Notes: generated by a model not told the origin, from the letters alone. 64,000 nt of DNA from Salpingoeca rosetta (GCA_033442325.1 JAWQFM010000028.1:453450-517449), one strand, 5' to 3'. Positions 33,897-56,902 are shown, counted from the stretch's first letter. Program-made: numbers and translations.

Positions 33897-34350
33897 NNNN
33901 NNNNNNNNNNNNNNNNNNNNNNNNNNNNNNNNNNNNNNNNNNNNNNNNNNNNNNNNNNNNNNNNNNNNNNNNNNNNNNNNNNNNNNNNNNNNNNNNNNNN
34001 NNNNNNNNNNNNNNNNNNNNNNNNNNNNNNNNNNNNNNNNNNNNNNNNNNNNNNNNNNNNNNNNNNNNNNNNNNNNNNNNNNNNNNNNNNNNNNNNNNNN
34101 NNNNNNNNNNNNNNNNNNNNNNNNNNNNNNNNNNNNNNNNNNNNNNNNNNNNNNNNNNNNNNNNNNNNNNNNNNNNNNNNNNNNNNNNNNNNNNNNNNNN
34201 NNNNNNNNNNNNNNNNNNNNNNNNNNNNNNNNNNNNNNNNNNNNNNNNNNNNNNNNNNNNNNNNNNNNNNNNNNNNNNNNNNNNNNNNNNNNNNNNNNNN
34301 NNNNNNNNNNNNNNNNNNNNNNNNNNNNNNNNNNNNNNCGTTCGTCGTCG

Positions 34351-38420: not shown

Positions 38421-39243
38421 GAAGAGGGGTGTCTGCTGTAAATGAACAAGCGTGACGGTGTGATGTATGATGAGCGAAGATGCGTGTTGTTGTTGTTGTT
38501 ATTTTGGATGTGAGACAAGTGTGAGTGTCTCGCGTCAACTCGCGCGCAGGCAGCGTGAGCAGCAGTGTGAAGTGGCAGTACCTCTGTTATCTGCGTTGGT
38601 GAGCTTGGTTGGCGTTGTCAAAGAAGAGCAGGCAGCTGGCCAGGTCGAGCGGCAAGCACAGGAAGGAAATGCGCAGCCACTCCTCCTCCTGTCTTTTGTT
38701 GGGAACGATGTGCGTAAGCGCGAGATTGCGTTGGGGTCGAACGCGTTCCACTATATTTTCGTATGTCGCATCCAAGGGAAAATGCGTGGAATTCCGCCAC
38801 AACGCATGTCAGTGTGTCGCAACACCACAAACAGTGGTGTCCTTGAGTGGTCCTCCAACGGTTGTGCTTGTCGTGCCAACTCAGTCAGTGTCCTGGTTGG
38901 TTGCTTGTTCCCTTCGCTTGTTCAGTTGTTCGCTTCGCTTTGCTTCGCACGGGCGAATATGAGCGCCGTTTTGTTTACATGCGATGTGAATCCGTTGCTT
39001 CTCCTCTTCTCCCTCGCTGCGATTTAACGATTCGAGCCGTGTCGTGTCCAAGTTCAGAAGATGTTCGAAGGTCGTTTTACTTTCACATGCGAAGATGGAA
39101 GTGCTGCAGAAGTGGCTGGGAATCAAGCCGGCCGTCGTCATCATGTCACTGTTAACCGCATGCCTAACACACATACACGCACATACAAACACGCACACAC
39201 ATATGCACATGCACACTGCGACCCTGCGCACACACGCCAACTG

Positions 39244-42200
39244 CTAGTCCTCTTGGTGGGTGATACAGCAGTGCTGGGGCAACGTAATGTCCCTTGTTGC
39301 CTGTCGCGAGCGCTTGCTTCGCTGCTGCTGTCGCTGTTGCGAACTGCCGTCGTCATCGTCGTCATCGCTGGCATCGTCTTCACGCTGCTGCTGGCCTTGT
39401 TGTTTGCCCCGGCCATGGCTGCTACTGTCCGTCTCATCAGCTGACGAGTCCTGTTTGTTGCAGCAACACAACAAATGCAGGAAGAAGGTGAGGACTGGCA
39501 GTAGGTGGTCGAACAGTGGACGAGAGATCTCACGACGTCATCAGAAGACCCGAGAAGGGAGGGGGGGGGTAGTTGGGACTGAAATGTTCACATGTGCAAC
39601 ACATATGCAACACATGCACACGCACACACTCATCCCTTCCTCCTCCTCTTCCATTGATTTCAATCGCTCCTCCCATCCCTCCTGGCTGTCGTCACAATGT
39701 TCTCACCGCAGCTTAGCACCACTACCACCACCACTGCTGCTGCTGCTGCTCCTCCTCCTCTTTCCCTTTCTCTCCGCCCACTGGAGCACGAGTGGCAATT
39801 CGCCTTACATAACGACGAACCTGCTCTTGTTCTTGCTGCTGCGAGCGCTTGCGCCGCTCCATATACTCAGTGATGTCCACGCCCTTGTCGTACGCTGCAC
39901 GCAGCTCATCGTCCATCAGCACCTCGTACGCCTGATGCAGCGGGGTGGTGGGGAGGACGAGTGTGTTGGTGGTGATTTGCAATCAGTGCAGTGCATGCGT
40001 CCGACACGTATGTGTGTGTGCGCGCGCGCAAGATCTCGTGATATGCGCAGGCTACATTTGAAAGCGTACGCAAGAATGCGTGCAAGCACACACGCAGGCA
40101 CACACACACACGCGCGCGCACACACAAACACATTCAAGCACGTCCGAATGCGTACAAGCACACACACACACACATACAAACACACACACACACCTCGACA
40201 ATGTCGAGGAACTTCTGTTCTGCGTCTGGGTGTTTGTTCTTGTCTGGATGCCAAACGCGCACGAGGCGGCGATACGCCCGTCGAATCACTGCCGTGCTCG
40301 CACCCCTTTTGCGTGTTGGAAGAAAGGAAGAGTTGATGGAGCGTACAGACAGAGCCGATGAGAGGGGAACATGAGAAGCGGAGGTGGAAGAGGTGAGGGT
40401 GTGACTGGGAGTGTGTTGCACTTGCGTGGGGATGCCAGGCGGAACGTCAGAAACGAAAGAACTGTCTCTTGTGCGCTCATGCATACAACATACGCACACA
40501 CGCACACACTTAGACACACACACACGCGCAACGCACTTGGGCACGCCGAGGATGCTGTAGTAGTCCTTGGTGGTGGCCTCCTTGACAGCAAGTTCAATCT
40601 TGCGCTGGAGCACCAGAAGTTTCATGTCGTGTGGCGAAATGCGGCGCGCACGTTTCACGTCGCGAAGCGCGTTTGAAAACATCTGCAGGGACAGTGATGA
40701 CGGAAAACAGCAACAGAGCAACGACAATGGTGGTGGTGGTTTTGGTGGTGGTGATGGTGGTGATGGCAACAGCATGAGAACACAAATTCACGTGTTAACC
40801 ACGTTGAGGGAGAATGACTGGAAGAACCCATTGCTTGTGCTATGCATATGCACACAAACGAACACGTGCACGCAACCATACCTCCTTTGTGAGGAAGGCC
40901 CACGCTCGATACATGAGCAAATGAACCACAAACTGGCTGTTCTCCTGCAGGCGAACGTCTTCCAACGCGCGGGTGCAACTGCACACAGACACATTTGGAC
41001 AGTGGGTGACACATTACAGTGAGTGCGAGGGTTTGGGACACAACTCAACGCTGGGAGCACACTTGCAGGCACATTCAATCATGTTGCCCCAGTTTCCGGG
41101 GTGCTTGTTCGTAACACATTATCTATCACGATGTTGCACCATGCCATGCCACGGCAACCAAACCTGTGGAGGGCAGCGTCAATTCTGTTGACGAAGAAGT
41201 GCAGTTCGCACAACTCCTGCAGCGCCGTCAGTGCCATCTCGCTGTGCGCATCCAATGCGAGCTGTGGAAACCAGAAGGACATAAGGCAACAGGGTGTCGG
41301 TGGGTGAACTGATCTCACGCACGCACACGCGCAAACACACACACACACATACACACACAGTCACACACAGTCACACACAGTCACACAAACACAAGACACG
41401 CAAACACACAAACAGACACACAAACAGACGCACACAGACACACAACGCATGAAAGCAAGCACATGCACACCAGAGTATCAAATGCATGAATGGCACGCAA
41501 AAACTCCCGCTGGTCCTTAAACTGTTTGGCCTCCGCCGCCAGCGACAGCACACGTCGCATCATCTGTTCCTCACGCTTGCACAGCTGTCGGGCACCCGCA
41601 TCGGGCCTTGATCGATGCCAAAGGCACGCCAGTAGCAGCAAGCAGCAGAAGTGAAGCAAATGTAGTTGTGTGCATGGGTGAGTGGTAGTCCAAAACCAAC
41701 CACACACACACACACACGCACACACGCACACACACACGCACACACACACGCACACACACACAACCGCAATTTGCAGAAGTAGGGCAAACTCCCGTTCCAC
41801 GGCGAGAAATACACACGTGGAAATTCTGATGCACTTGGCAAGGACGGTCGCCGCCACCTCTGTGTTGCCGAGCAAACGCCAGTGAATGGCGCCATGTAGT
41901 CGAAGCGTTCTGGCATCCGCTTTGTCAAGGCGCACCAGCATGCTCGCATCCGCCAACGCCGCGCTGGCGTTGCCTGCAAGCAATGAAATTGGAGGGGGGA
42001 GGTGTGACAATGTGAGCGCGTGTGTGAAGGACAATGACAGGTTAGCAACTGTAAACACCAAAGGTGTGGACAATCAAGCGACCGCAAAACAAACCAAACA
42101 TGCACACACACGACACACACACACACACGACACGCACACGACACACACACGACACATACACGACACGCACACGACACACACATACACACGATACACACAC

Positions 42201-45200
42201 GACACATACACGACACGCACACGACATACACATACACACGACACACAGTCTTGTGTTCCTCCGTGTACCATGTCTGAGATGGCACTCGGCGCGCCACCGT
42301 CGATATGTAGCGCTGGCTGGGGCATCGACCAACACTGCTGACAGCGCGGTGATGGTGGCTGGTGAGCACATGTCCGTTGCTGACTCATCCACGTCGCCAG
42401 ACGATGAGAGCATATCAGTGAGCGTCTGTAATACTTCGAGGCCACGCGACGCCCGCGCTTCCAGTGCGCTCACTTGCGCATGTGTTGTTCTCGATGGCGT
42501 TTCTCCCCACAGCGCCAACAGCTGACGCAGCTCATTGCTTGCAAGCAAAGCCTCTTGGAATCGGCCCACCTTGCCCAGCACGTCAAGCAAGAGAAGATTC
42601 AGTGTCAGCTGCACTTGTTGCACAATTGCAACCGCCTTTGCACTCTGCTGCTGTGGTTGTTGTTGGTACTGTGGTTGCGCGTTTGCCATGAGAGCTGCGA
42701 CTGGGTTGCGCTCCAAGCTGAGGAGCATATATCGCAGCAAGGCCACGGCACCGTCAAACTCATACGCGCGCAGCAGCGCGTGCACATGTGCGAGCTGGCG
42801 TGTCACATCTCTGCTCAGCACGTGTGCTTGCTTCTCCTCCTCCAGCAAGCGACCAACACTTAACGCAATCAGCCTGTCCTCGAAAGATACATCGTCGATA
42901 TGCGCTTGTCCGCTACTGCCACCTCGGCTGCCATTGCTGTTGTCGCCATCGCTGCTGCTGCTGCTGCTGCTGCTGCTCTCATCGCTGTTGCTGCGATGCT
43001 GGCCAGAGCGATACACATACCCGCAGACCAACACAGCAGCGTCGTCAGCGCTGTCGCCACCATCAATGTTGTCGGCGTTGCTCGAGACTCGATCCATCTC
43101 AACTTCATCGGTACCATCAGGAGCATCATCATCATCTGGGTTCCCGTCCTCCATGACGTCAATGCTGAACTTGAAGGAGCAACCAACAGCATCCGCGTTG
43201 CTTGCATGCATGGATACAGCAAACGATGATGATGACGACGACAGCGGTGGTGCCGCTGCCTTTGCACCACCATCCTCGATTCTGCACGACAAAGCGTCGA
43301 GCACCGTGGGAACGCAGATGGAGGTGCCAGCGTCCGTGTGCTCATCATCAGCTGAAGCGCGCTTCGGTGGTCCGCCCGCGTTGTGTTTGTCGCTGCTACC
43401 ACACTCACCATCATCATCCACGGTGTACACACCACGAGGAGCCGTGGTGAGTATGCAGTCATATCGCCGCGTCGCGTCAAGGAGAGAATGCACCGGCTGT
43501 CCGCACGAAACCTGTGGATTTGCAGGTGACAAGTGTTGGCGAGGTTTAAGATGAGTGGGGATCAGAAAGCATCTAACACGACAGGGACATTAACGGCCAA
43601 GATGTGAAGAATGGGGGAATAAGGAAAGCTGATGCTCCTGTGAAACTTCGCACACACACACATACACACGCACACGCACGCACACATGAACATACACACA
43701 GACACGCACACACATACGCACAACACACGCACACACATACACACAACACACACACCCTGTATAACAGAGCACGTGTGCGGTTATACCTGCACGTCTGTGG
43801 AAGACCAGCGCGGAAAGACTGCAATGACAGGTGTGTTGAGCACATCCAATTCATGGTCGTCACCCTCATCACCACCCTCTTCTCCTTCCCCACCATCACC
43901 ACCACTCTGCCGCTGAGGGAGGAGCGGTGTCACGACGACTGCGGTGAACAGGCGCTCGTGGCCAGAGGTGGAATGGTTGGCCGTCACCTCAAAGTGAATG
44001 TCGCGTTCGCTGAGTGCATCGATTTCATCACTGCTGTTGCTGCTGTTGTCGTCGTGGCTGGCGCCCGTGCCCAGATTGACAGCGGGTGGCGGCAGCATGC
44101 GCAGTGACACGTGCGTGATGGCATCGAGGTCTGGCTGCAGCTGGAAATCGGATCCGCTCGCCGCTGTTGGCAACCCGGCATGGCGCGGCCGAATGATGCA
44201 ATGCAAGGGCGACCCGGCCACCGCAGTGTTGCTGCAATATGTGTGCATGTGTGGGGGGGGGGGTGCGTGTGTGCGCGTGTGCGTGTGTACATGTGCACAT
44301 GTGTGTGTGTGCGTGTGTGTACATGTGTGTGCGTGCATGTGTGTGCGTGCATGTGTGTGCGTGAGTGGGGTGGTGTGTGTATGTATGTGTGGTGTCATGA
44401 CGTGCAAGAGCACAACGTCGCGAGATAGACATTTGCAGCTTCACCATTACCACGCACCTGTCGCAGACGATAACGCTGGTAAAATCGGGTGGTCCATACT
44501 GGCAAAATTCCCCCTTCCAGCCCTTGTGACATGTGCACACGTTCGCGCCAATGCACCGCCCGTGCTTGTTGCAGTCATTCTCACAGGCAAATCCGACCTG
44601 AGAGTGTGTATGAGTGGGCGTCAGCGAGTGAGTGAGTGTGCGCGCATGTTTGTGTCCATATGTGTGAGCACAGTAAGTAGCTGCATACGCTCGTGTGATT
44701 TCTGCTGAGCTAGCGGGCAGAAGCACACGCGCACACACGAACAAACAGGCGAAGAAGAATGTCATACGCACAGACGAATGTCACAAGTCACAAACACAAA
44801 CTCACGTACCAGGAACGAGGCTGGCCTCTGCTTCTCGAGCTCAAACACGTGTGACGTGTCTGTGGTGTTGTTGTCAATGGCAGTGATAAGCCGGCTGTCC
44901 TTGTTCAGCAGCTTCACCCGGTAGCCTGCAAGCATAAGCAACGGTGAAGGCAAACATGAAAAACAGAACACACCACGCACGTGCGCCTATACACGCACTC
45001 TCATGTGCACACGCACACAGAGTCATACACACCCGCACACGCACACGCACACGCACACGCACATGTACACGCACACGCACAAGCACACGCACACGCACAC
45101 GCACACGCACACGCACACGTACCTGGGCGAGCGATAAAGATGGAGCCCAGGCCTTCAGCGGGCACATCGTACAGCCCGAGTGTGTAGTACTGGCAGTGCC

Positions 45201-45403
45201 CGTGGTAGAGCGGTCGTGGGCAGAACACGACACCGCGGAGTTGGGACCATGGCATCCATGTTATGCTCGCGTGCGTAAACTCGGATGGCTCAAGGCCACC
45301 ACGTACATCTCGCACAAGCAGTCGACCGCCAGCTACAGTGGTGGTGTGTAAGTAAGTGCGCGCGTGTGTGTATGTGTGTGTGTGTATGTGTGTGTGTGTG
45401 TGG

Positions 45404-45443
<40 letters not shown>

Positions 45444-48400
45444 ATGTGAGGGGTCGGAAGACATTTATTCACTTGTGATATTTCCACTTTTACCCTCCAC
45501 AAACACAGTGCATACATGCACACACACACGCACACGCACACACACACACACACACACACCTTGCCTGTCGCCATGGTGCAGGAATACACGGCTGCCTGCG
45601 GGGATGCGAAGAGACGCAATTGTGTCTGATGTGGAGGGATCCTCATGAAACTGTGCAGCCGTGACAACACGTCAGGATGTGAGGCACAATTAACAGCGAG
45701 TGGCAAGCAGTCACCACTGGGATTCATACGAACAACGACGCGCGTACACTTACCCCAACACAAACTCAACACACACGCCCACTCATACGCACATGCTCTC
45801 GAGTGCAGGATGGAGGTTCTAGTGTAACTCACATGAAACAAGGAGGCAATGGGTGTTTGGTAGATGTTTGGAGCAGCGATGGTTGGCAGCTTGATCTCCC
45901 GTCCTTGAAAGTCTTCCTCGGAAAACGCAGACACGGAGGACGGCGCACTCTTGCTTGGCAGGTGCACGGAGGGCTGCAGCGCCAGTGCTTGCAGGCATTG
46001 CACCTGTCGTGAAAGCAAAAAAAGGAGAGGGGATGAGGACACCAAACACAGCAAACACACGCACACGCACGCGCACACACGCACGCACGCACACAGATAT
46101 GAGGTGCTAAGTCGTTGGAACCTCAAACATCATTTGAACAGGAAGAGCAAAACCATCAACCACCACGATCCAGCTTGCGTGCATCACCACCCCCAATCAA
46201 TTGCTGCACCTGTGCGCCGTTTGTGAATGTTGACGCGTTGTTGGTTGAGCCAGCAAGGTCTGCAAGCACTTCATCGCACTTCCAGCCACCGTACAACACA
46301 GCCTGTGCAGTCACCAAGGCGAGTGCATGGGGGTGGTATTGGGTTAATAGTTGAGCAGCACAGGTGGACAAACAGCACCAGCAGCACCAGCAGCACCAGC
46401 AGTGGCCAAAGCATATTTCTTCACAAATGACACATACACACGCACACACAAAATACACACACAAACAACAAACATGACGTACGTGATAGCCTGGCTTGAG
46501 GAGGATGGAGTGCACTGGCTGTCGGAGGCGATGCTTGCCGCAACACGAGAAGCCACTTGATCTGCCTCTCCACTCGCTGTCTGCAAACACGCGCAGCACA
46601 TCCTTGTTGTGTGTGTGTGTGTGCGTGTGTGCGTGTGTGCGTGCGTGGGTGGGTGGGTGTGCAAGTACATGCTTTCAATGTGAATATATGGCGGAATGAA
46701 GGGCGATGCGTGGGTGTGACAAGCAGTCGTGATGTATGATCCATACGTGTCACCCGTCAAGCCTCCAACAGCGATGCAAGTGCTGTGGGGCCAGACCTGG
46801 CGTTGTGACGACGATGCACTTGTGTGCGTTGACGAACGGCGCTGTCGTTTGTGTTCTTGCCCCTGCTGCTGTTGTCGTTGTTTCAGTTTTGCGCGTAGCT
46901 CTTCCACGCGTTCAATGTGTGCAGCTTCTGTGAAACGCCGAGCAGCACAACGGCCCATGGTTGGTTCATGCAGTGTCACCAATATTGTGTGTGTGTGTGT
47001 GTGTGTGTATGTGGAGTCACAGTCGATTCAACTGTGTGCATGATGTGGCTTCACCTTTGCTTGTTGCTGCTCGTGTCTGCGATGAAGAAGGTGCATCCAC
47101 AACGGATGGCTTGACGCGTGCCTCTGCCGGCTGCGCCAACAGCGCCAACATGTCGCCATGAAACACCTGTAAATATCAGGCCAAAGTACGCGACCGCGTG
47201 TCGGTGGTTGTGCTTGTGCGTGAGTGCACATGAGTGTGAAAGCAAATTTACACGTGTACGTGTGAGAGGCTGCTGTCGAATGCACAGCACCACACGTGCA
47301 ACAAGGCGGCACATGCTGACCTGAAAAGCGGAATCTTGACAGGGTGCCAGCCTCAGCGCTGTGCTGAGGGTGGCTCGCATATTTCCGTCCAGACACAAGT
47401 GCGGATACTGGAGCGACTGGATGGCATAGCCTTTCACCATCCCACCGCCTGCATACACACATTCACCAGCAAACATACGCCACAACAACAAACATGCATG
47501 CACACAGTGCCAGTGTGCAAGAAACAAGGTGTTGTGTCACTGAACGCGCATCCGTAGCCTAATGGCGCAAAGCCCAGATCAGGCAGTCGCATCAAACTGT
47601 CTTACGTTCGGCAAACGATGTCTTGAAGATGTAGAAGCGCTGCAGAGCGGAAGATGAGCATGGTGCAAGATGAACAGATGCGGTTTCTTCCAAACTGTCC
47701 ACTGATGCCCACACGCACACACACACACACGCACAGAAAGGCTGGGGTGAGGGTAGAGACGATCATGATCGTTCTTGGTCAGACGGTGCAGGGTATTAGG
47801 TGTAGCCATGCAGCCATATGTTTGCGTGCATGCGTGGCGTGTCACAGCACCACACCTGCTGCGTCGATGGCGACACACGAAGGCGAGTCTTCCAGCCGCA
47901 AGACGATCGCGTTGATGTCTTCTGGTTGGGGCTGCAGTGCCCACCACTGATCTGCACTGTCCACGTGACAAGGATGCAGCTGCACTCCGCCTGCCGTGCA
48001 GCGGTGCGTACACCAGGGACACAGAGGTAAGGAGATAGGTTGCACCATGAGCAGCACTTTGGGCTGCTTTGCATCACACATGGGCATGTGTATCTGCAGA
48101 GAGTCCATGCACAAGCATGCACAAGCATGCGCACGCACGCACGCAGGCATAGCAGACACGCAAGCACACATGCACACGCAAGCACACAAGCAAGCACACA
48201 CGCATGCACACAAGCTTGCACACAAGCAAGCACGCATATGCACACACACGCCACATCAGTCCTCACCGTGATGGGTTGCTTGCAAGCAAGCCCGCATGCC
48301 GCCGTGCAACCGTAGCTGCGTTGCTGGAACCCCAAACCCGTCATCCTGTTGCCGAGGCCGCCGGGCGCGCTGATGCGGGTGCGCTGCGGTTGTTGCACCG

Positions 48401-48471
48401 CTGCTGCTTCCACAACCCGTTGATGCCACCACAACTGCCAGCACCACCAGCCACACAACGATGTGCGCCAT
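39244..48471 (-). CDS. Secretory-pathway multidomain J-protein: signal peptide - ricin-B lectin - beta/gamma-crystallin-like repeats - EGF - uncharacterised region - TPR - DnaJ (DNAJC3/P58IPK-like C-terminus)
   Basis: 23 GT-AG exons stitched with consistent phase. Ricin repeats: CLQ..VQLHPC..DQWW, CVA..VHLAPC..LQRF, CLD..LRLAPC..FQVF. Crystallin-like: VSAFSEEDFQGR...DTIASLRIPAGSRVFLH. EGF: CENDCNKHGRCIGANVCTCHKGWKGEFC. J domain: DYYSILGV...[36 protein letters not shown]. Confidence 0.8.
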
Positions 48472-48565
48472 TGTCGTCTTGCACACAATTCGAACCGTTG
48501 CGCCAAAATATTTATGCTGTCGCGCTGTCCTTCTTCAACGGAGCCGCTGTTCGCGGTCAACAGTG
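48472..48565. promoter_or_regulatory. Putative compact bidirectional promoter
   Basis: 94 nt between divergent ATGs 48471 (-) and 48566 (+). Confidence 0.45.
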
Positions 48566-48723
48566 ATGGTTGTGGTGTTCGTGCTTGCGCTTGTGGTGAT
48601 GGTGGTGGTGGGGCTGATGGTGGAGGACGTGGATGGTGTGCCGTTAAGCCTGAGCCAGAACAACCAGCTTGTCTTTGTGATTGGCGTCCAATATGAGTGA
48701 GTCCGAGTTCCTTGCCTGCATGC

Positions 48724-48765
<42 letters not shown>

Positions 48766-49022
48766 TAGAGCGTGTGTGTGTGTGTATGTGTGTGTGTGTG
48801 TGTGTGCGTGTGTGTGTGTGTGTCGGTTGCAACAGGAACTGCACCGCGTTCATGATGCTGCTGCTTCCAGTCGCCACACTTACCAACTTGACTCACCACA
48901 CCACCAACCTTCAAACCCCAACTGGACAGGGCCATCATGCATGTTATGGACATCCTCGGCCAGCACCCAGAAGTGTCTCTTCTGTCAGGTGTGTGCGTGT
49001 GCATGCGCTTGTGTGCATGTGC

Positions 49023-49066
<44 letters not shown>

Positions 49067-50182
49067 CCATAACCGTGCTCTCCTCCAACTCAACCAGTTT
49101 GACCTTGCTCGGGTACAGGCACTGGGAAGCCAAAGAACGATGCGCAACACTTGCAGAATGTATGGTTTGTGCACTGGCAAACGTGCCTCCGCTGCGTGAG
49201 TGCGTGGTGGCGTTGGTTCTGTCGTCCCTCGCACACGTGCCTTATGCTCACGCTTACCACAAGCACCTTGATGCCTTTTTCGCGTCCACTCGACCAGGTC
49301 TTCAAGACAGCGCACGAGCTGGGCGGCATGCTGTCATTCTCCTTTCACGATGAGGCGCATATGACGGAGAAATCGGAGCTGTTCACAGACGACAGCAGAC
49401 TTGCGCTCCTCGGTAGCTGGCGCGACCACTGGGACCTGGATAAGCCCCTTTTAGCACTCCAGTCCCCCCGTTTTGCCACCATGACGCGCTACCTCCAGGT
49501 CGTATCTGCGTGTGTGTATGTTTGTGTCTGTGTGTGCGTGTATGTATGTTTACGTGCCTGCCTGTCTGTATGTATCCGTGTGTGTGTCAGTGTGCCTTGT
49601 AATGCAATCGCATGTGCTCGTGCTTGCACTCTATTCACCTCCCCACCTTCCCTCCGTCTCCGTACCATCATCTTCCCACCCACCAACAAAACTGCACCGC
49701 GCTTCCCCCCCCCACACACAGGCGCTGTTTGGGGAGGATAACACCAAGTTTGTCGTGGTGCTGCAACATCCGTTGCATGCATGGCGGCCTGCCCTGAACA
49801 TGTATTGGCAGCAGGCGGCGCTGTCGTGTGGCAAACCGTTTGTGCAGCAGTGGGTGCACATTCACCAGACACTTGAGGAGGACATGGCGCACCTCAAGCA
49901 TGTGCACGTCGTGCGATACGAAGACCTCGTGCCAGCGTCACACGTGCCAACGCCAGATAACCAGCTGCACCAGTACAACCGCGAACCAGCGTTCAAATTC
50001 CGTGGCGCAGGCGCTGGCTGGAGACAGGGACAGGGACTCATGCAGGCACCGCGGTTCACATCACTAGCGCAGCAACAGCGGCAACAGCAGCAGGTTCTCA
50101 ACAGCCTCTTCCACTTTCTTCGCGTCTCTCGGCCCGTTGCTCTCTGGACTTCGTTTCAAGACTCTGCCATCCTCAACCACAG
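48566..50182 (+). CDS. Signal-anchored sulfotransferase-fold protein with degenerate PAPS-binding motifs; 3' end lost in gap
   Basis: Hydrophobic N-terminus, then LVFVIGVQYEAIMHVMDILGQHPEVS, GTGKPKNDAQHLQNVF, AHMTEKS, WDLDKPLLALQSP, TRYLQALF..KFVVVLQHP, VHVVRYEDLV. Same motif order as Sulfotransfer_3-type enzymes. Confidence 0.8.
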
Positions 50183-50298
50183 GTAGGGTTGGACGTTATG
50201 TTGTGTGTGTGTGTGTCTGCCTGTGTGTGTGTGTGTGCGTCTGCCTGTGTGTGTGTGTGTGTGTGTGTGTCTGCCTGTGTGTGTGTGTGTGTGTGTGT

Positions 50299-50793
50299 NN
50301 NNNNNNNNNNNNNNNNNNNNNNNNNNNNNNNNNNNNNNNNNNNNNNNNNNNNNNNNNNNNNNNNNNNNNNNNNNNNNNNNNNNNNNNNNNNNNNNNNNNN
50401 NNNNNNNNNNNNNNNNNNNNNNNNNNNNNNNNNNNNNNNNNNNNNNNNNNNNNNNNNNNNNNNNNNNNNNNNNNNNNNNNNNNNNNNNNNNNNNNNNNNN
50501 NNNNNNNNNNNNNNNNNNNNNNNNNNNNNNNNNNNNNNNNNNNNNNNNNNNNNNNNNNNNNNNNNNNNNNNNNNNNNNNNNNNNNNNNNNNNNNNNNNNN
50601 NNNNNNNNNNNNNNNNNNNNNNNNNNNNNNNNNNNNNNNNNNNNNNNNNNNNNNNNNNNNNNNNNNNNNNNNNNNNNNNNNNNNNNNNNNNNNNNNNNNN
50701 NNNNNNNNNNNNNNNNNNNNNNNNNNNNNNNNNNNNNNNNNNNNNNNNNNNNNNNNNNNNNNNNNNNNNNNNNNNNNNNNNNNNNNNNNNNNN
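50299..50793. other. Assembly gap (N run)
   Basis: 495 Ns flanked by (TG)n. Confidence 0.99.
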
Positions 50794-50889
50794 TTGTTGT
50801 TCCATGTGTGTGTGTGTGTGTGGGGGGGGGGGGGGGCACTGATGCAAGTGTTGGTTAAGTTGTTGTTGTTGTTGTTGTTGTTGTTTAAG

Positions 50890-50948
<59 letters not shown>

Positions 50949-51327
50949 AACGCAGGAGAATTAAACGATTTCGAAACGTAGCACATCAACGGCGTCAAGG
51001 TGTAACATAACACAAGCAGAACCAAAAGCAAGGCACGTAACGACGGCAAACAAAGGGTCAATACAGGAGGGGGGGGGGTCAAAGAAAAGGTCAGCAAAAC
51101 ATAGAAGAACGCGAAGCGCAACAACAAACCAGATCGCAACAACAAACACACTGCGCAACTCCATGGCACGAGCAGCAGACAAAAGAAAGGAACGCACACA
51201 GCAGAATGACTGGAGCCATAGCACTAACAGCAAAAAAGAACAAAACACAGCAACATAACAACGGTGCATGCTCGGGAAGACGTTCCATGTGACACGCACA
51301 TGTGTGGAGATTGACTTGACTTGGTGG

Positions 51328-54300
51328 CTACATTGGCTGATTGGAAGCAACATTGCTACTGCTGGTAACGCTGGTGCTACGTGTGGCCAGAGACACGAGG
51401 CGAGGGTGGATCTGCGCAAATGTCGGCCGCTGCGACGGGTATTGCGCCATGCACTCTTGGGCCAGGCTCTGGTACCACGTGGGCGTGCTCCCTGCATTAC
51501 AATACACGAGAAATTATATGAACGCACGGAAACAAAGCACGGTGGAGTGAGAACTGCAACGCAATCTGTACCGTAGATACAGACACCATTTACAGCTTCC
51601 ATGCACATGTAATGTGACATGAACATAACTTTTGGACAAACACAACAAACAAACACAACAACAAACATAACAGACAAACAGACAAAACACAGAAACACGC
51701 ATCTGCACGCGCTCACACGCATGCACACACATACATACACTCACATTCACATACATACACATCCACAACACATCCACTCACATCCACAACACATCCACAG
51801 ACAATTCCCCCCCCCAAACACACACACAAAATCAACACACCCTTTGCGTCAAAGTTGAGGCGCTTGCCCTGTGACAGCAAGGTAAACAGGCGTGCCATCA
51901 TTGGCCCAGCGAAATTGGGTCCAACTTCCTGCTCAATCAAATCAGGCACGTGCTCCATTTCAATCTCCCACAGCAGCACCCCAAAGCTGAACACGTCCGC
52001 CTTTCCATCGTACTTGCCACCATCCAGCACCTCCGGTGCCATGTACATGGGCGTGCCCACAGCAATGGTGTGGTTCACCACGCGGCTCAGCGTTTGCGTG
52101 CACAGCTGGCGGTCGTACACCACGTCCCCAGGAACCTCCTTCTGGTCATCGTGATGCTGGCCGCTGCCGCCACCAGCGTGATCATCGCCATCGTCATCGT
52201 ATTCACCGCTGGCTGTGCCCTTGCTGCCTTTTGTTTTGCGGAACAAGTGCGTTGCCCTGCGCAGTCGGGACCGCAGCGGCGCCACGCGCTTGGCTGTGAT
52301 GCGCTGGGTGATTGTGCCAAAGTCTGTGATCTTGGCGCGGAGGCTGGTCGACACAAGCACGTTTCCGCTCTTCAAGTCCCTGCGAGAAGGACAAGGCAGC
52401 AAATGTGTGGAGCAGGAGACGGACGATACATATGATGAGGGATCGTGGCTCGGGCCGCGTTTGGCACAGCAGCACATTGCTCACATGGGTCGACAAGACA
52501 CGCAAAACGGAGAAACGGGCACGTGCGTGTTTGAAGACGATTGCGCGTGTACAAACACACGCACAGGCACATGCGTGTACCCACACGCACAGGTGCATGC
52601 GTGTACCCACACGCACAGGTGCATGCGTGTACCCACACGCCCACACACGCCCACACACAAGCAGACACGCGCAAAATAAACGCACACACACACACACCTA
52701 CACAAACACACACAAGCAGACATGCGCACACACAAACACACACAAGCAGACATGCGCAAAAAACGCACACACATACACACCAACACAAACACACACACAC
52801 AAACACACACAAACACACACACAAATACACACGTATACGCACCTGTGCAGCTGGCCCAGCTTGTGAATGAAAGCCATGCCGCTAGCCACGTCCTGTGCAA
52901 GACGAAGCTTTAGACTCTGCAGTGTGAGGGAGCGCACAAAGACGCAGCCATCAGCCTCATCGTGCTGGGCCAAGCCATGCTCGCTGTCCTGTGTGTCGGT
53001 GGCGTTGAAGTGGCGCAGCGCGGCAGCGAGGCCACCGTCCTCAAGCAGCTGGCGCAGGGAGCCCAACTGGACAAACTCAATCACAAGGAAGGGGACGCCC
53101 GTGCCGGGCTGCTGGCCAGCACCAAAGAAGCGAACCAGGTTTGGGTGGCGTGTTCGTTGCAGGAACTCCACCTCCTTCTCAAAGTCTTGCATGCTGGCGC
53201 CATCGTCCAGCAGCAAAATGGCCTGCCTTGGAATCTTCACTGCCACGTGCACGGCATCCCACTGGCCCTCCCACACCTCACCAAACCCGCCACTCGCCAC
53301 CACGCGCAGCAGCTGCAGCTCGGAAAACTCAATCTCCCACACGGCCTTGAGCGCCAGCACCTCTGCATCCTTCTCCTCCAGCAGCTGCTCCTTCAACGCG
53401 TTGTCCACGCGCAGGCGGCGGTGGTCGCGGTAGGCGCGGTGCACGGCATAAGCAAGCCCTTGCACACCCAAAACCGCAGCCAGTGTGGCGAGCACAATGG
53501 TGACGGTGTCCTTGCGGGGCTTACACTTGCCATCAACGTTGCGATAGCCGCCGGCGCAGCTGCACTTGAACTGGTAGGTGGTGCGATCCTGCAGCGCTGT
53601 TAGGTGGCTCAGCAGGCGTGTTCGGCGTGCAGACACGCGCAGCTTGCAGGTGATTGCCGTGTTGGCGAGCTGCAGGATGGGAATGGCCTTGCTGTTGTCC
53701 AAGTTGACAAAGTTCAGGTCCTGCACGCCCTCACTGGCGAGCGCGGTGAGGTACGCCGTCGGGGCCTCGATGAACTTGGGCGAATTGATCCACTCGTTGT
53801 CACTCAGGTCTAGCAGCTCGATGTCGCTGAAGGAGAGGCAGCGGCGCAGCAGTGAGTGTGTTCTTTCTTGGGATTGAGCGTCCTTGTTCATCCAATCACG
53901 AGCCACTACAACGCGGCTGCCCCATGCGCGGCACAGTCCGCGTGACACGGGGAATTGGGTTTTGCTGATGTCCAACACCTCAACAGAGGGCGCTTCAAAC
54001 TGCGTCAGGCTCGTGCTCCCAGACAGGTTGAGGTGCTGTAGTGGAGAGAACACGGCGCCCTCCCGCAGCATCGTGTTGTCCTGTAAGAGGACGTTGTTGA
54101 ACTGGCGGTCAGGGCAGAGGTCAAGCCTCGTGTAGCTGGTACCGGTGAGTTGCAGTGTGCTGACACTGGGCGCGAGAGCCCCGCAGATTGCTTTGAGGGG
54201 GACTGTGCTTTCGTTCATGCCAGGCCAGCCAAGCCCCAGGGACTCGAGCATAATGCCCGATGTCCGCCGTTGTGAGAGCAAGCGCGTCGCCAGCTGCTCC

Positions 54301-56684
54301 ACGTCAACGTTGCGCACGTCGACGAACCGAAGCATGGGTGGCACGGTAACGCTTTCGCCAATACTGATGGTTGCCTTGCCCATCAGTTCCGGTGCAGGGC
54401 TCACCTCCAGGCGCGTGAGGTTGGTGAGCGCTAGAAGGGGTGAAATGTCAAGGTGTTTGATGTGGTGGTTGTTGAAGAAGAGCTCTTCAAGGTCCACGAG
54501 CCGCTCAAAGTTGGGTACATGTTTGATGGGGTTTCCGTTGAGGCGTAAGGACTTGAGCTGGGCCAGGGTGTCTGGTAGGTCGAACTTCTCCACTCTGTTG
54601 TTGGCCAGGCTGAAATGCAGAAGACTGGGCACATTGACGAAGCTGCCCTTTTCAACAGCCTGGACGTTGTTGTCGCTGACGTCAAAGATGCGCAAGTTCT
54701 CGTGGTTGCTGAGCAGCTTGTGGGAGAGCTTTGTCAAGGCGTTTGCTTGCAAGTAGAGCACCTCCAGCGCAGGAAGACTATCTAGTAGGCTGTCGTTGAT
54801 GCACTCGATCTTGTTCTCCGTGATTTCAATGCGGGTAAGTCTCCGCAAGCCTGTCCCGAACCACGCGCTGCTGAGCTCGGTCAATTCGTTTCGTGAGAGG
54901 TCCAATCGCTCAAGGTTGGTCAGGCCCGCGAATGCCTCGGCTTCGATGGTCTTAAGCGTTCCCCGGAACAATGAGAGCTCTCGCAGGTTCGTGGCGTGGG
55001 CCAGAAGGTCAGTGGACACGGTGGAAAGCTGCAGGAATGTCAAGTTCAGCTCCCTGAGCTGGGTTTGATGTAAAAAGAAATCGTCCCGGAGATACTGGAT
55101 CGGGTTGCCCCCAATGTCCAATTTGCGCAGCTGAGTGAGCGTTTGCAGCAAGCCAGGCTTCAGTTCGGTGATGTCATTGCCATGCAGCGTGAGGGTTTTG
55201 AGAGCGGCGTTGCTCACGAACGCATCCTCATGCACGCTGGTGAGGTGATTGTATAGCAGCACGAGCTCTTCCACCTTGGTCAGGGGAGCGAACATGCTGG
55301 CATCGACAATGGTGATCTGGTTGTTGTCCAAGCGCACATGTGTCAGGGCGTCCATGTCGTGAAATACGGTCTCTGCAGCAACATGTCGAAGTCGGCTGTG
55401 GCTGACTGTGAGGGATTGCAGGAATGGAGCCCGCGCGAATGGCGCGCCATTTGCACTTGTATTCAGCTGCACAACTGAGCTGTCTTTGATCTCGATGGCT
55501 GTCAAGTTGGTGAGCGGGTTGAGCGTGCTGAGGAAGAAGGTGTCGGTGACCAGCTGCTGCAGTGTGATGGTGGCGACGCTGCTCCAATTGCCCAGCTCAA
55601 GTATGGTGCGCACCACGTCTGTGCTGAGCTCGTTTTGCGCTGGATCTTCGCCTCTTAGAATCAAGTGGTGGGTTGCAACTGTCTCAGACAGTATGCGTAT
55701 TGGGTTGTGGCTCGTATTGAAGACGGCAAGGTCCTCGCTTGCTTTTGTTGCATCCTTGACCGTGAGGACAAGCCGTGGATGATCGATGAGCGTCGATTGT
55801 AGAACACATAAGTCGCCCACAACTCTCTGTAGTGAGCACTCCAGAGTATCTCCCCGGGGTTGGCGGGAACGGGCTTGGGTAGCAGGGGTAGTGGTGACAG
55901 GGGTGGCAGCAGGGGTGGCGGCGGTGGTGGTGGCAGGGGTGGCAGAAGTTGTGTGGCTCGTGGATGCTGAAGAGGATGGTGTGGATTCGTTGAGAGCCCT
56001 GCGATGCTTCTGGTGGTGGAGGTGGTTCCAGTCCTGACGGTCAGCCACACCGTTGCCCTTGCCTGGCACTGGATTGAGATTGCCGTCTGTGTCAGCCGTG
56101 CTTTCCTTGCTGGTGTCCATGCGTGGGCGCAAACCGTCCCCTGCATCCGGCTGCAGTGTGCGCCTCGTGTTCAACAGGACAGGGTTGCAAAACGCAGCCA
56201 CAATGTCCTGGAGCGCGGCCAACTCCTCGTCGTGTGCTCTCTTCACAGCTTTCGGTGTGGGAGTGACGAGCCAATCACCGTCTTCCTCTTCGGCGCCTGG
56301 GCGCGCGTTCTTGGGTCCCTGTGCTTGGTTGGCTGAAGAGAGGCGCGCCAGAGCGTGGCGTGCACGGCCACACAGCCTTGCATGGCGATCGCAGCCAACG
56401 CGCAAAACGGACAACGGCGAGGCTGGTGAATCCTCTGCCTCGTTCTCAGTGCAAATCCCATCGAAAATGGCGTGGGCGGGTTCTTCTCCTTGACTGAGAC
56501 GACGAAGGCCTGGGTCTGCTTGTGCTTCTCGTTCTCGATGAGCGTGGAACTGTGGGAGCTGGGGGACGACGGGGGAGCTTGGCTTGTCGACTGATGCTGG
56601 AAAGGACAGGTGTTGGGCGGTGGCGGCTGCCACCACCAACAACAAGCAGAAGAGCGCCAACAACAACTTCTTGCTTGCGGGCAT
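51328..56684 (-). CDS. Leucine-rich-repeat receptor protein kinase (TKL group, predicted Ser/Thr)
   Basis: Exons 56684-52843, 52379-51841, 51491-51328. Signal peptide, many LxxLxLxxNxL repeats, Cys-rich CSCAGGYRNVDGKC, TM IVLATLAAVLGVQGLAYAV. Kinase motifs ASGGFGEV, VAVK, HRDLKSGN, DFG, GTPMYMAPE, DVFSFG, CMAQYPSQRPTF. Confidence 0.95.
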
Positions 56685-56902
56685 CGTTGTTGTGACGGTT
56701 GGTTGAAAATGTCCACAAATCTTCGTCACTTGGAAATATGCGGTTTGTGGTGTCGGTTACAGTTCACTTCCCGAGCTGCTGCTGCGACCGCTGTTGCTTT
56801 TTGTTGATTTGACCGCCGTCCGCCGTCCGCTCTCGACGAACACCAACCAACCAAACCACCCACCCCCTCGCGCATCATTTTCATCAGCACCAATTATTGG
56901 TG

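Follow-up and report, generated by a model that had tools for sequence, protein, structure and literature searches.

A candidate DNAJC3-type J-domain protein of Salpingoeca rosetta with a predicted ricin-type trefoil and an EGF domain in its N-terminal extension

In the cytosolic protein DNAJC7 (TPR2), which has no signal peptide, a J domain comes after TPR repeats that clamp the EEVD tails of Hsp70 and Hsp90. SDF2 and SDF2L1 are described as essential co-factors of the J-domain protein DNAJB11 (PMC12661433), and in AIM1/CRYBG1 beta/gamma-crystallin domains and a ricin-like trefoil are found in one protein (PMC3554465). In this study we analyzed a gene on the minus strand of a 64,000-nucleotide stretch of Salpingoeca rosetta DNA (JAWQFM010000028.1:453450-517449 of assembly GCA_033442325.1; this whole stretch is the window, and positions are counted from its first letter) and compared it with these systems and with DNAJC3/P58IPK. 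With a probability of roughly 60% we read it as a single-copy 23-exon gene for a secretory-pathway class-C J-domain protein of the DNAJC3/P58IPK (ERdj6) type that carries about 900 extra N-terminal residues. From N- to C-terminus it would consist of a signal peptide, a ricin-B-type trefoil, a Q/S-rich linker, a Cys-containing region of about 270 amino acids (aa) that is possibly Greek-key, an EGF domain, a long acidic linker, a TPR-like helical solenoid, an HPD-containing J domain and finally a tail of charged residues.

The 23-exon gene model

The exons were set by their flanking splice motifs on the minus strand of 38800-48900 and were then joined by script. The coding sequence thus obtained is an open reading frame of 4521 nucleotides (nt) that runs from the ATG at 48471 to the TAG at 39244 without any internal stop and encodes 1506 aa. 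All 22 introns are GT-AG and are 127-370 nt long, and the donor of exon 6 must be at 46754 (GTGACA) for the reading frame to close. When codon usage was scored with frequencies trained on an adjacent open exon of 1343 codons, the frame of the model had the best score in 21 of the 23 exons, the exceptions being exons 6 and 7, and the mean score of the introns was below zero. An in-frame stop is present at 48537, which is 22 codons 5' of the ATG, and there is no other ATG between them. The only strongly hydrophobic segment of the protein is its first 24 residues, where Kyte-Doolittle values of 19-residue windows are up to 2.29 (threshold 1.6) and after which come small polar residues; one marginal window of 1.66, at aa 1032-1050, contains polar residues. 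The N-terminus is presumably cleaved as a signal peptide. An earlier note on this DNA had claimed 23 exons in one phase-consistent frame from 48471 to 39244 with a signal peptide at the start, and this is borne out by the rebuilt model, its GT-AG introns and its codon usage, and, for the putative signal peptide, by the hydrophobic segment and the in-frame stop upstream of the ATG. When the genome (55.4 Mb in 68 contigs) was searched with exons 11, 14 and 20, each of them matched only itself, and the gene is, as judged from this assembly, single-copy.

A different arrangement would be that of two adjacent genes, with exons 1-13 or 1-14 coding for a secreted protein with ricin and EGF domains and an internal Met of exon 15 serving as the start of a separate TPR-J co-chaperone; the phase-consistent join would then have been produced artificially by manual modelling. 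Exons 14 and 15 are of low complexity and without relatives, and exon 15 has in-frame Met codons; however, these two exons stay open across 445 and 1243 nt, respectively, in the spliced frame and both are coding-like by codon usage. The largest gap between coding exons is 370 nt and, since no intron is longer than this, there is no space for a 3' untranslated region and a promoter between the two halves. Stand-alone cytosolic TPR-J proteins such as DNAJC7 exist, but here the downstream half would have no signal peptide of its own, even though it is structurally closest to DNAJC3, a lumenal protein. The one-transcript model is drawn from the genomic sequence and from the shares of 31-mers that occur in sequencing runs. 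When 31-mers were sampled from 44600-48471, which is the N-terminal half, a fraction of 0.34-0.35 was present in three RNA-like runs of one 2024 study compared to 0.33 expected from exons only, and for the whole gene the fraction present in the same three runs was 0.45-0.51 compared to about 0.42 expected from exons only. Three other runs contained about 0.9 of the 31-mers, as DNA would. Because the shares in the RNA-like runs match the exons-only expectation, these libraries contain sequence of both halves without their introns, which is no proof that the two are joined. Exons 1-23 probably form one gene, and the two-gene arrangement is improbable.

Two features of the introns were also observed. 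Most of the 22 introns are made up largely of CA/GT microsatellites, the translations of which (THTH..., CVCV...) contaminate six-frame profile searches. Intron 22 (39821-39450), if retained, would add about 33 further codons up to a stop, so that the C-terminus would be shorter and lack the acidic tail that exon 23 encodes.

The domains of the encoded protein

The J domain is encoded by exons 20-22. Exon 21 matches positions 12-47 of PF00226 with an E-value of 2.1e-10 and 41 bits (cut-off 27.8), it contains WHPDKNK in which the HPD is intact, and its best PDB match, 2CUG (2.7e-9), is among J domains. Exon 20 ends with DYYSILGVP, which is the start of the J domain, and exon 22 covers PF00226 positions 49-63. 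The earlier claim of a J domain with an intact HPD is confirmed by the score of exon 21 above the cut-off. Upstream of the J domain lie about 410 helical residues, nine TPR motifs being the standard of DNAJC3. When the second half of exon 15 (211 aa) was modelled by AlphaFold2 without an alignment, ten helices were obtained with a predicted local distance difference test score (pLDDT) of 72 and a predicted template modelling (TM) score of 0.70, and the nearest models of the ESM Atlas to this model were TPR clusters at TM 0.38-0.50. The model of exon 14, which encodes most of the preceding acidic Ser-rich linker, had a pLDDT of 44. For exon 20, which holds the last helix, a linker and the start of the J domain, the sole PDB match at E ≤10 was human DNAJC3 (2Y4T) residues 344-390, collinear over 47 residues. 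These comparisons support a predicted TPR-J junction like that of DNAJC3/P58IPK, and the TPR helices proposed earlier stand insofar as the half of exon 15 is an all-helical repeat near TPR clusters and exon 20 aligns to DNAJC3.

At the other end of the protein, exons 1-5 contain three subrepeats with the motifs QWW, QRF and QVF, each of which lies 5-7 residues downstream of P-C. The similarity between the beta and gamma subrepeats has a z-score of 7.1, which was not reached by any of 2000 shuffles, and that between alpha and gamma has a z-score of 4.3. When the three-row repeat profile was compared to 177,635 PDB sequences, the ricin B chain took ranks 1 and 2 and a four-trefoil mosquitocidal toxin took rank 3; the E-value was 0.46 and therefore this is an argument from ranking and not from a significant score. 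Exon 4 alone (42 aa) was placed with ricin-type beta-trefoil clusters of the ESM Atlas at 0.95-0.96, a score of 0.95 being reached by shuffled sequences about 1 in 100 times, and nearly all of its top matches were PF00652 or PF14200. In hhalign the repeat profile matched the Pfam-verified ricin domains of the same genome with a probability of 67% and P 5e-5. Thus, the three ricin-B (QxW/F) subrepeats of the earlier note hold up in the repeat z-scores, the PDB ranking, the Atlas score of 0.96 and the hhalign comparison. Together these four independent tests, each weak to moderate, make the predicted ricin-type trefoil well supported, and the assignment of aa ~50-195 to this fold is highly probable.

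Further searches with ricin domains gave less. A phmmer search found nothing, other home-made ricin hidden Markov models (HMMs) were too narrow or weak (p ~0.04), and one home-made ricin HMM was discarded as it was contaminated by microsatellite translations. Three MAFFT alignments of split subrepeats were set aside because of misalignment. The search for relatives with an alignment led by one full-length ricin domain of the same genome returned only two close fragments, which are named polypeptide GalNAc-transferase, and a related-locus search of prokaryotic genomes with ricin domains was empty. A six-frame scan of the S. rosetta genome with PF00652 showed at least 18 other ricin-B sites, two of which carry full-length domains.

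The EGF domain claimed earlier is confirmed in exon 13, which has six Cys and matches two Pfam EGF families above their cut-offs, PF23106 with E 1e-6 and 29.1 bits (cut-off 24.3) and PF07974 with E 2.7e-5 and 24.9 bits (cut-off 22.1). Since the chain contains an EGF domain, the protein would most naturally be located in the secretory pathway. In the Q/S/R-rich linker that follows the trefoil, the Pfam scan gave only chance-level matches far under the cut-off.

The region between this linker and the EGF domain had been described as three beta/gamma-crystallin-like units, and this was not established. Exons 11 and 9 were nearest to Atlas clusters with PF00030, PF03995 or PF08964 at 0.85 and 0.81, respectively, with recognition values under the useful range; in view of the result with exon 4, these leads are not a generic effect of short fragments. 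The signature Y/F-x4-F/Y-x-G fits three strings, at aa 282, 315 and 374. A home-made HMM, built from 30 Streptomycetales I36 domains and two PF00030 loci of identical sequence, gave 3.2 bits on the middle region, which was equalled by 14 of 2000 shuffles (empirical p ~0.007). The per-exon Pfam scans gave no match to crystallin families, hhalign of the region against 31 I36/crystallin domains gave probabilities of at most 1%, and neither its pairwise comparison to a canonical bacterial beta/gamma-crystallin nor the comparison of the three units with each other was significant. A PF00030 search found none in the S. rosetta genome and found it in 2 of 401 Actinomycetota, a homologous-protein search from a bacterial beta/gamma-crystallin returned nothing, and PDB searches with exons 11, 16 and 17 were uninformative. 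A Greek-key reading of aa 270-543 is possible, and we would give it somewhat less than an even chance.

Table 1. Features of the gene, listed from the whole model and then from N- to C-terminus
Feature	Position in the window	Strand	Evidence
Whole coding model, 1506 aa	39244..48471	-	23 exons; GT-AG introns; codon-usage frame test; no genomic paralogue
N-terminal hydrophobic segment, aa 1-24, read as signal peptide	48400..48471	-	Kyte-Doolittle; cleavage inferred
Predicted ricin-B-type (QxW)3 beta-trefoil, aa ~50-195, exons 1-5	47146..48324	-	Internal repeats, PDB ranking, Atlas, hhalign
Low-complexity Q/S/R-rich linker, aa ~196-269	46797..47145	-	Translation
Cys-containing region, aa 270-543, exons 6-12 (the three crystallin-like units of the earlier note)	44810..46796	-	Atlas leads, non-significant comparisons
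EGF domain, six Cys, exon 13	44499..44585	-	PF23106, PF07974
Acidic Ser-rich linker, ~350 aa, exon 14 and first half of exon 15	42903..44231	-	No Pfam match
Predicted alpha-helical TPR-like solenoid, aa ~942-1354, exons 15 (second half)-20	40566..42902	-	AlphaFold2, Atlas, exon 20 PDB match
J domain, exons 20, 21 and 22; HPD at 40242-40250	39881..40565	-	PF00226, PDB
Charged low-complexity C-terminal tail, end of exon 22 and exon 23	39244..39880	-	Translation; no KDEL/HDEL

Elsewhere in the window, the open exon of 1343 codons lies at 52698-56729 on the minus strand; its translation has a signal peptide and a large number of leucine-rich repeats, together with a transmembrane segment and the first part of a protein-kinase domain. 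The kinase continues in a downstream exon near 51713-52477 on the same strand, and this neighbour resembles a leucine-rich repeat receptor kinase. Runs of N are present at about 33900-34350 and 50300-50800, and the GC fraction of 0.376 in 50001-52000 is at least partly due to an N run.

A probable DNAJC3-type co-chaperone and its alternatives

The likeness to the DNAJC3/P58IPK layout that had been pointed out earlier is supported by the predicted signal peptide, the TPR-like solenoid, the J domain with HPD and the alignment of exon 20 to DNAJC3, and a DNAJC3-type layout is the best reading of the gene, which makes its product a candidate member of that family. We infer that such a protein would enter the endoplasmic reticulum (ER), where its J domain would dock onto the lumenal Hsp70, BiP, and trigger ATP hydrolysis, and where the TPR solenoid would hold unfolded clients, as in P58IPK. 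The N-terminal trefoil and EGF modules may then provide an additional surface to which a partner or a class of clients could bind, with whatever ligand the trefoil might have, in the way SDF2 and SDF2L1 serve as co-factors of DNAJB11.

Several results weigh against this reading. There was no Pfam TPR match on any of the 23 exons, and the TPR helices of the earlier note are confirmed in part. Foldseek of the half of exon 15 against the PDB was non-significant and returned helical-repeat proteins among which the TPR domain of P58IPK (3IEG) was at rank 22, and the match of exon 20 to DNAJC3 has an E-value of 0.32, which alone is not significant. Exon 15 as a whole (414 aa) had no relative at E ≤0.001 when phmmer was run on 1.84 billion representatives, a library without this genome's own proteome, and since no relatives were detected the link between the EGF domain and the TPRs passes through lineage-specific, low-complexity sequence. 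In the trefoil there was no match to PF00652 or PF14200 in the per-exon Pfam scans and the six-frame PF00652 scan of the genome. Finally, the ER-retention motif KDEL/HDEL is absent from the translated C-terminus.

The absence of KDEL/HDEL would also fit one gene for a secreted or cell-surface matrix protein, with a signal peptide or a type II anchor, in which the trefoil and EGF modules are the working parts and a captured TPR-J part acts outside the ER or is vestigial. DNAJC3, however, stays in the ER without a KDEL. Modules of the EGF and ricin types typically occur in extracellular proteins, the genome has many ricin-B genes, choanoflagellates commonly shuffle domains, and ERdj3/DNAJB11 is secreted under stress, all of which a protein of this kind would be in keeping with. 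What speaks against this alternative is that the HPD and basic helix II of the J domain are intact, from which it can be argued that there is selection on the interaction with Hsp70. A secreted or surface protein is in our estimate unlikely, and the DNAJC3-type co-chaperone of the secretory pathway is preferred.

The earlier note had gone further and proposed that clients are recognised through their sugars. The galactose contacts of ricin 1-alpha we take to be Asp22 (in C-x-D), the stacking Trp37 before the Cys and Asn46 before QxW. When the alignment to the ricin B chain and the translation were read by eye, it was found that the equivalents of Trp37 in the three subrepeats are His, Ala and Ala, those of Asn46 are Asp, Leu and Phe, and those of Asp22 are Gln, Ala and Asp, so that the Asp of C-x-D is retained in the gamma subrepeat only. 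The full set of sugar contacts (Asp, a stacking aromatic and Asn/Gln) is kept in none of the three subrepeats. An active Gal/GalNAc lectin trefoil by which glycoprotein clients are chosen by their sugars and delivered to BiP would fit the ricin-type fold assignment and the Asp that is retained in the gamma subrepeat, but the other contact positions are changed and, moreover, glycans that end in Gal/GalNAc are made in the Golgi, which is not the workplace of BiP. Because the canonical galactose contacts of ricin B are mostly replaced, glycan reading is speculative; the proposal of recognition via sugars is weak, and we doubt an active Gal/GalNAc lectin strongly. Hardly more probable is the broader idea of a lectin-guided BiP co-chaperone, in which a DNAJC3-type TPR-J part carrying a ricin-type trefoil, and perhaps Greek-key domains, would read a glycan or a class of glycoproteins and pass it directly to Hsp70. 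If this were true, the SDF2-DNAJB11 pairing would have a covalent counterpart, and a glycan-coupled Hsp70 route would exist apart from the calnexin/calreticulin cycle.

Comparison with described systems

A shallow literature search, in which domain-architecture databases were not included, found no description of a trefoil-EGF-TPR-J chain. At present the gene stands as a single, lineage-specific, domain-shuffled gene and as a candidate, not as an established new system. If the fusion is real and conserved, a close relative of animals would have a protein that combines, in a single chain, a beta-trefoil module for binding with a J domain that recruits Hsp70, and this would offer a simple system for what SDF2-type trefoil partners add to ER J-proteins and for whether add-on modules set the client choice of a co-chaperone.

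The predicted trefoil shares the (QxW)3 pattern with the ricin-B (CBM13) domains of the GalNAc-transferases of the same genome, to which the hhalign probability and P given above apply, but those domains are joined to a glycosyltransferase and pass the Pfam cut-off, which the present locus, exon by exon, does not. AIM1 and CRYBG1-3 would be a precedent for the pairing of a lectin with crystallin domains if the crystallin fold is real here, where it is unproven; unlike the present protein, AIM1 carries its trefoil at the C-terminus and lacks a J domain, TPRs and an EGF domain. DNAJC7 is alike in that TPRs are followed by a J domain, whereas the predicted signal peptide and the disulfide-type EGF domain of the present protein indicate the secretory pathway. 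In the system of SDF2/SDF2L1 with DNAJB11 (ERdj3) and BiP, a beta-trefoil protein is likewise paired with an ER J-protein, and this is the nearest functional analogy; that system, however, has a class-B J-protein and a MIR-type trefoil on a polypeptide of its own, while here the predicted trefoil is ricin-type and would be fused to a class-C TPR-J part. From DNAJC3/P58IPK, the family closest to it, the present protein differs by its roughly 900 extra N-terminal residues (trefoil, Cys-containing region, EGF and acidic linker), by a charged tail of 80 aa and by the N-terminal half of its TPR part, for which phmmer detected no sequence similarity to any protein. What it would have in common with DNAJC3/P58IPK is a signal peptide and a helical TPR solenoid, both of them predicted here, the latter directly before a C-terminal J domain with HPD, and an exon 20 that is collinear with human DNAJC3 344-390.

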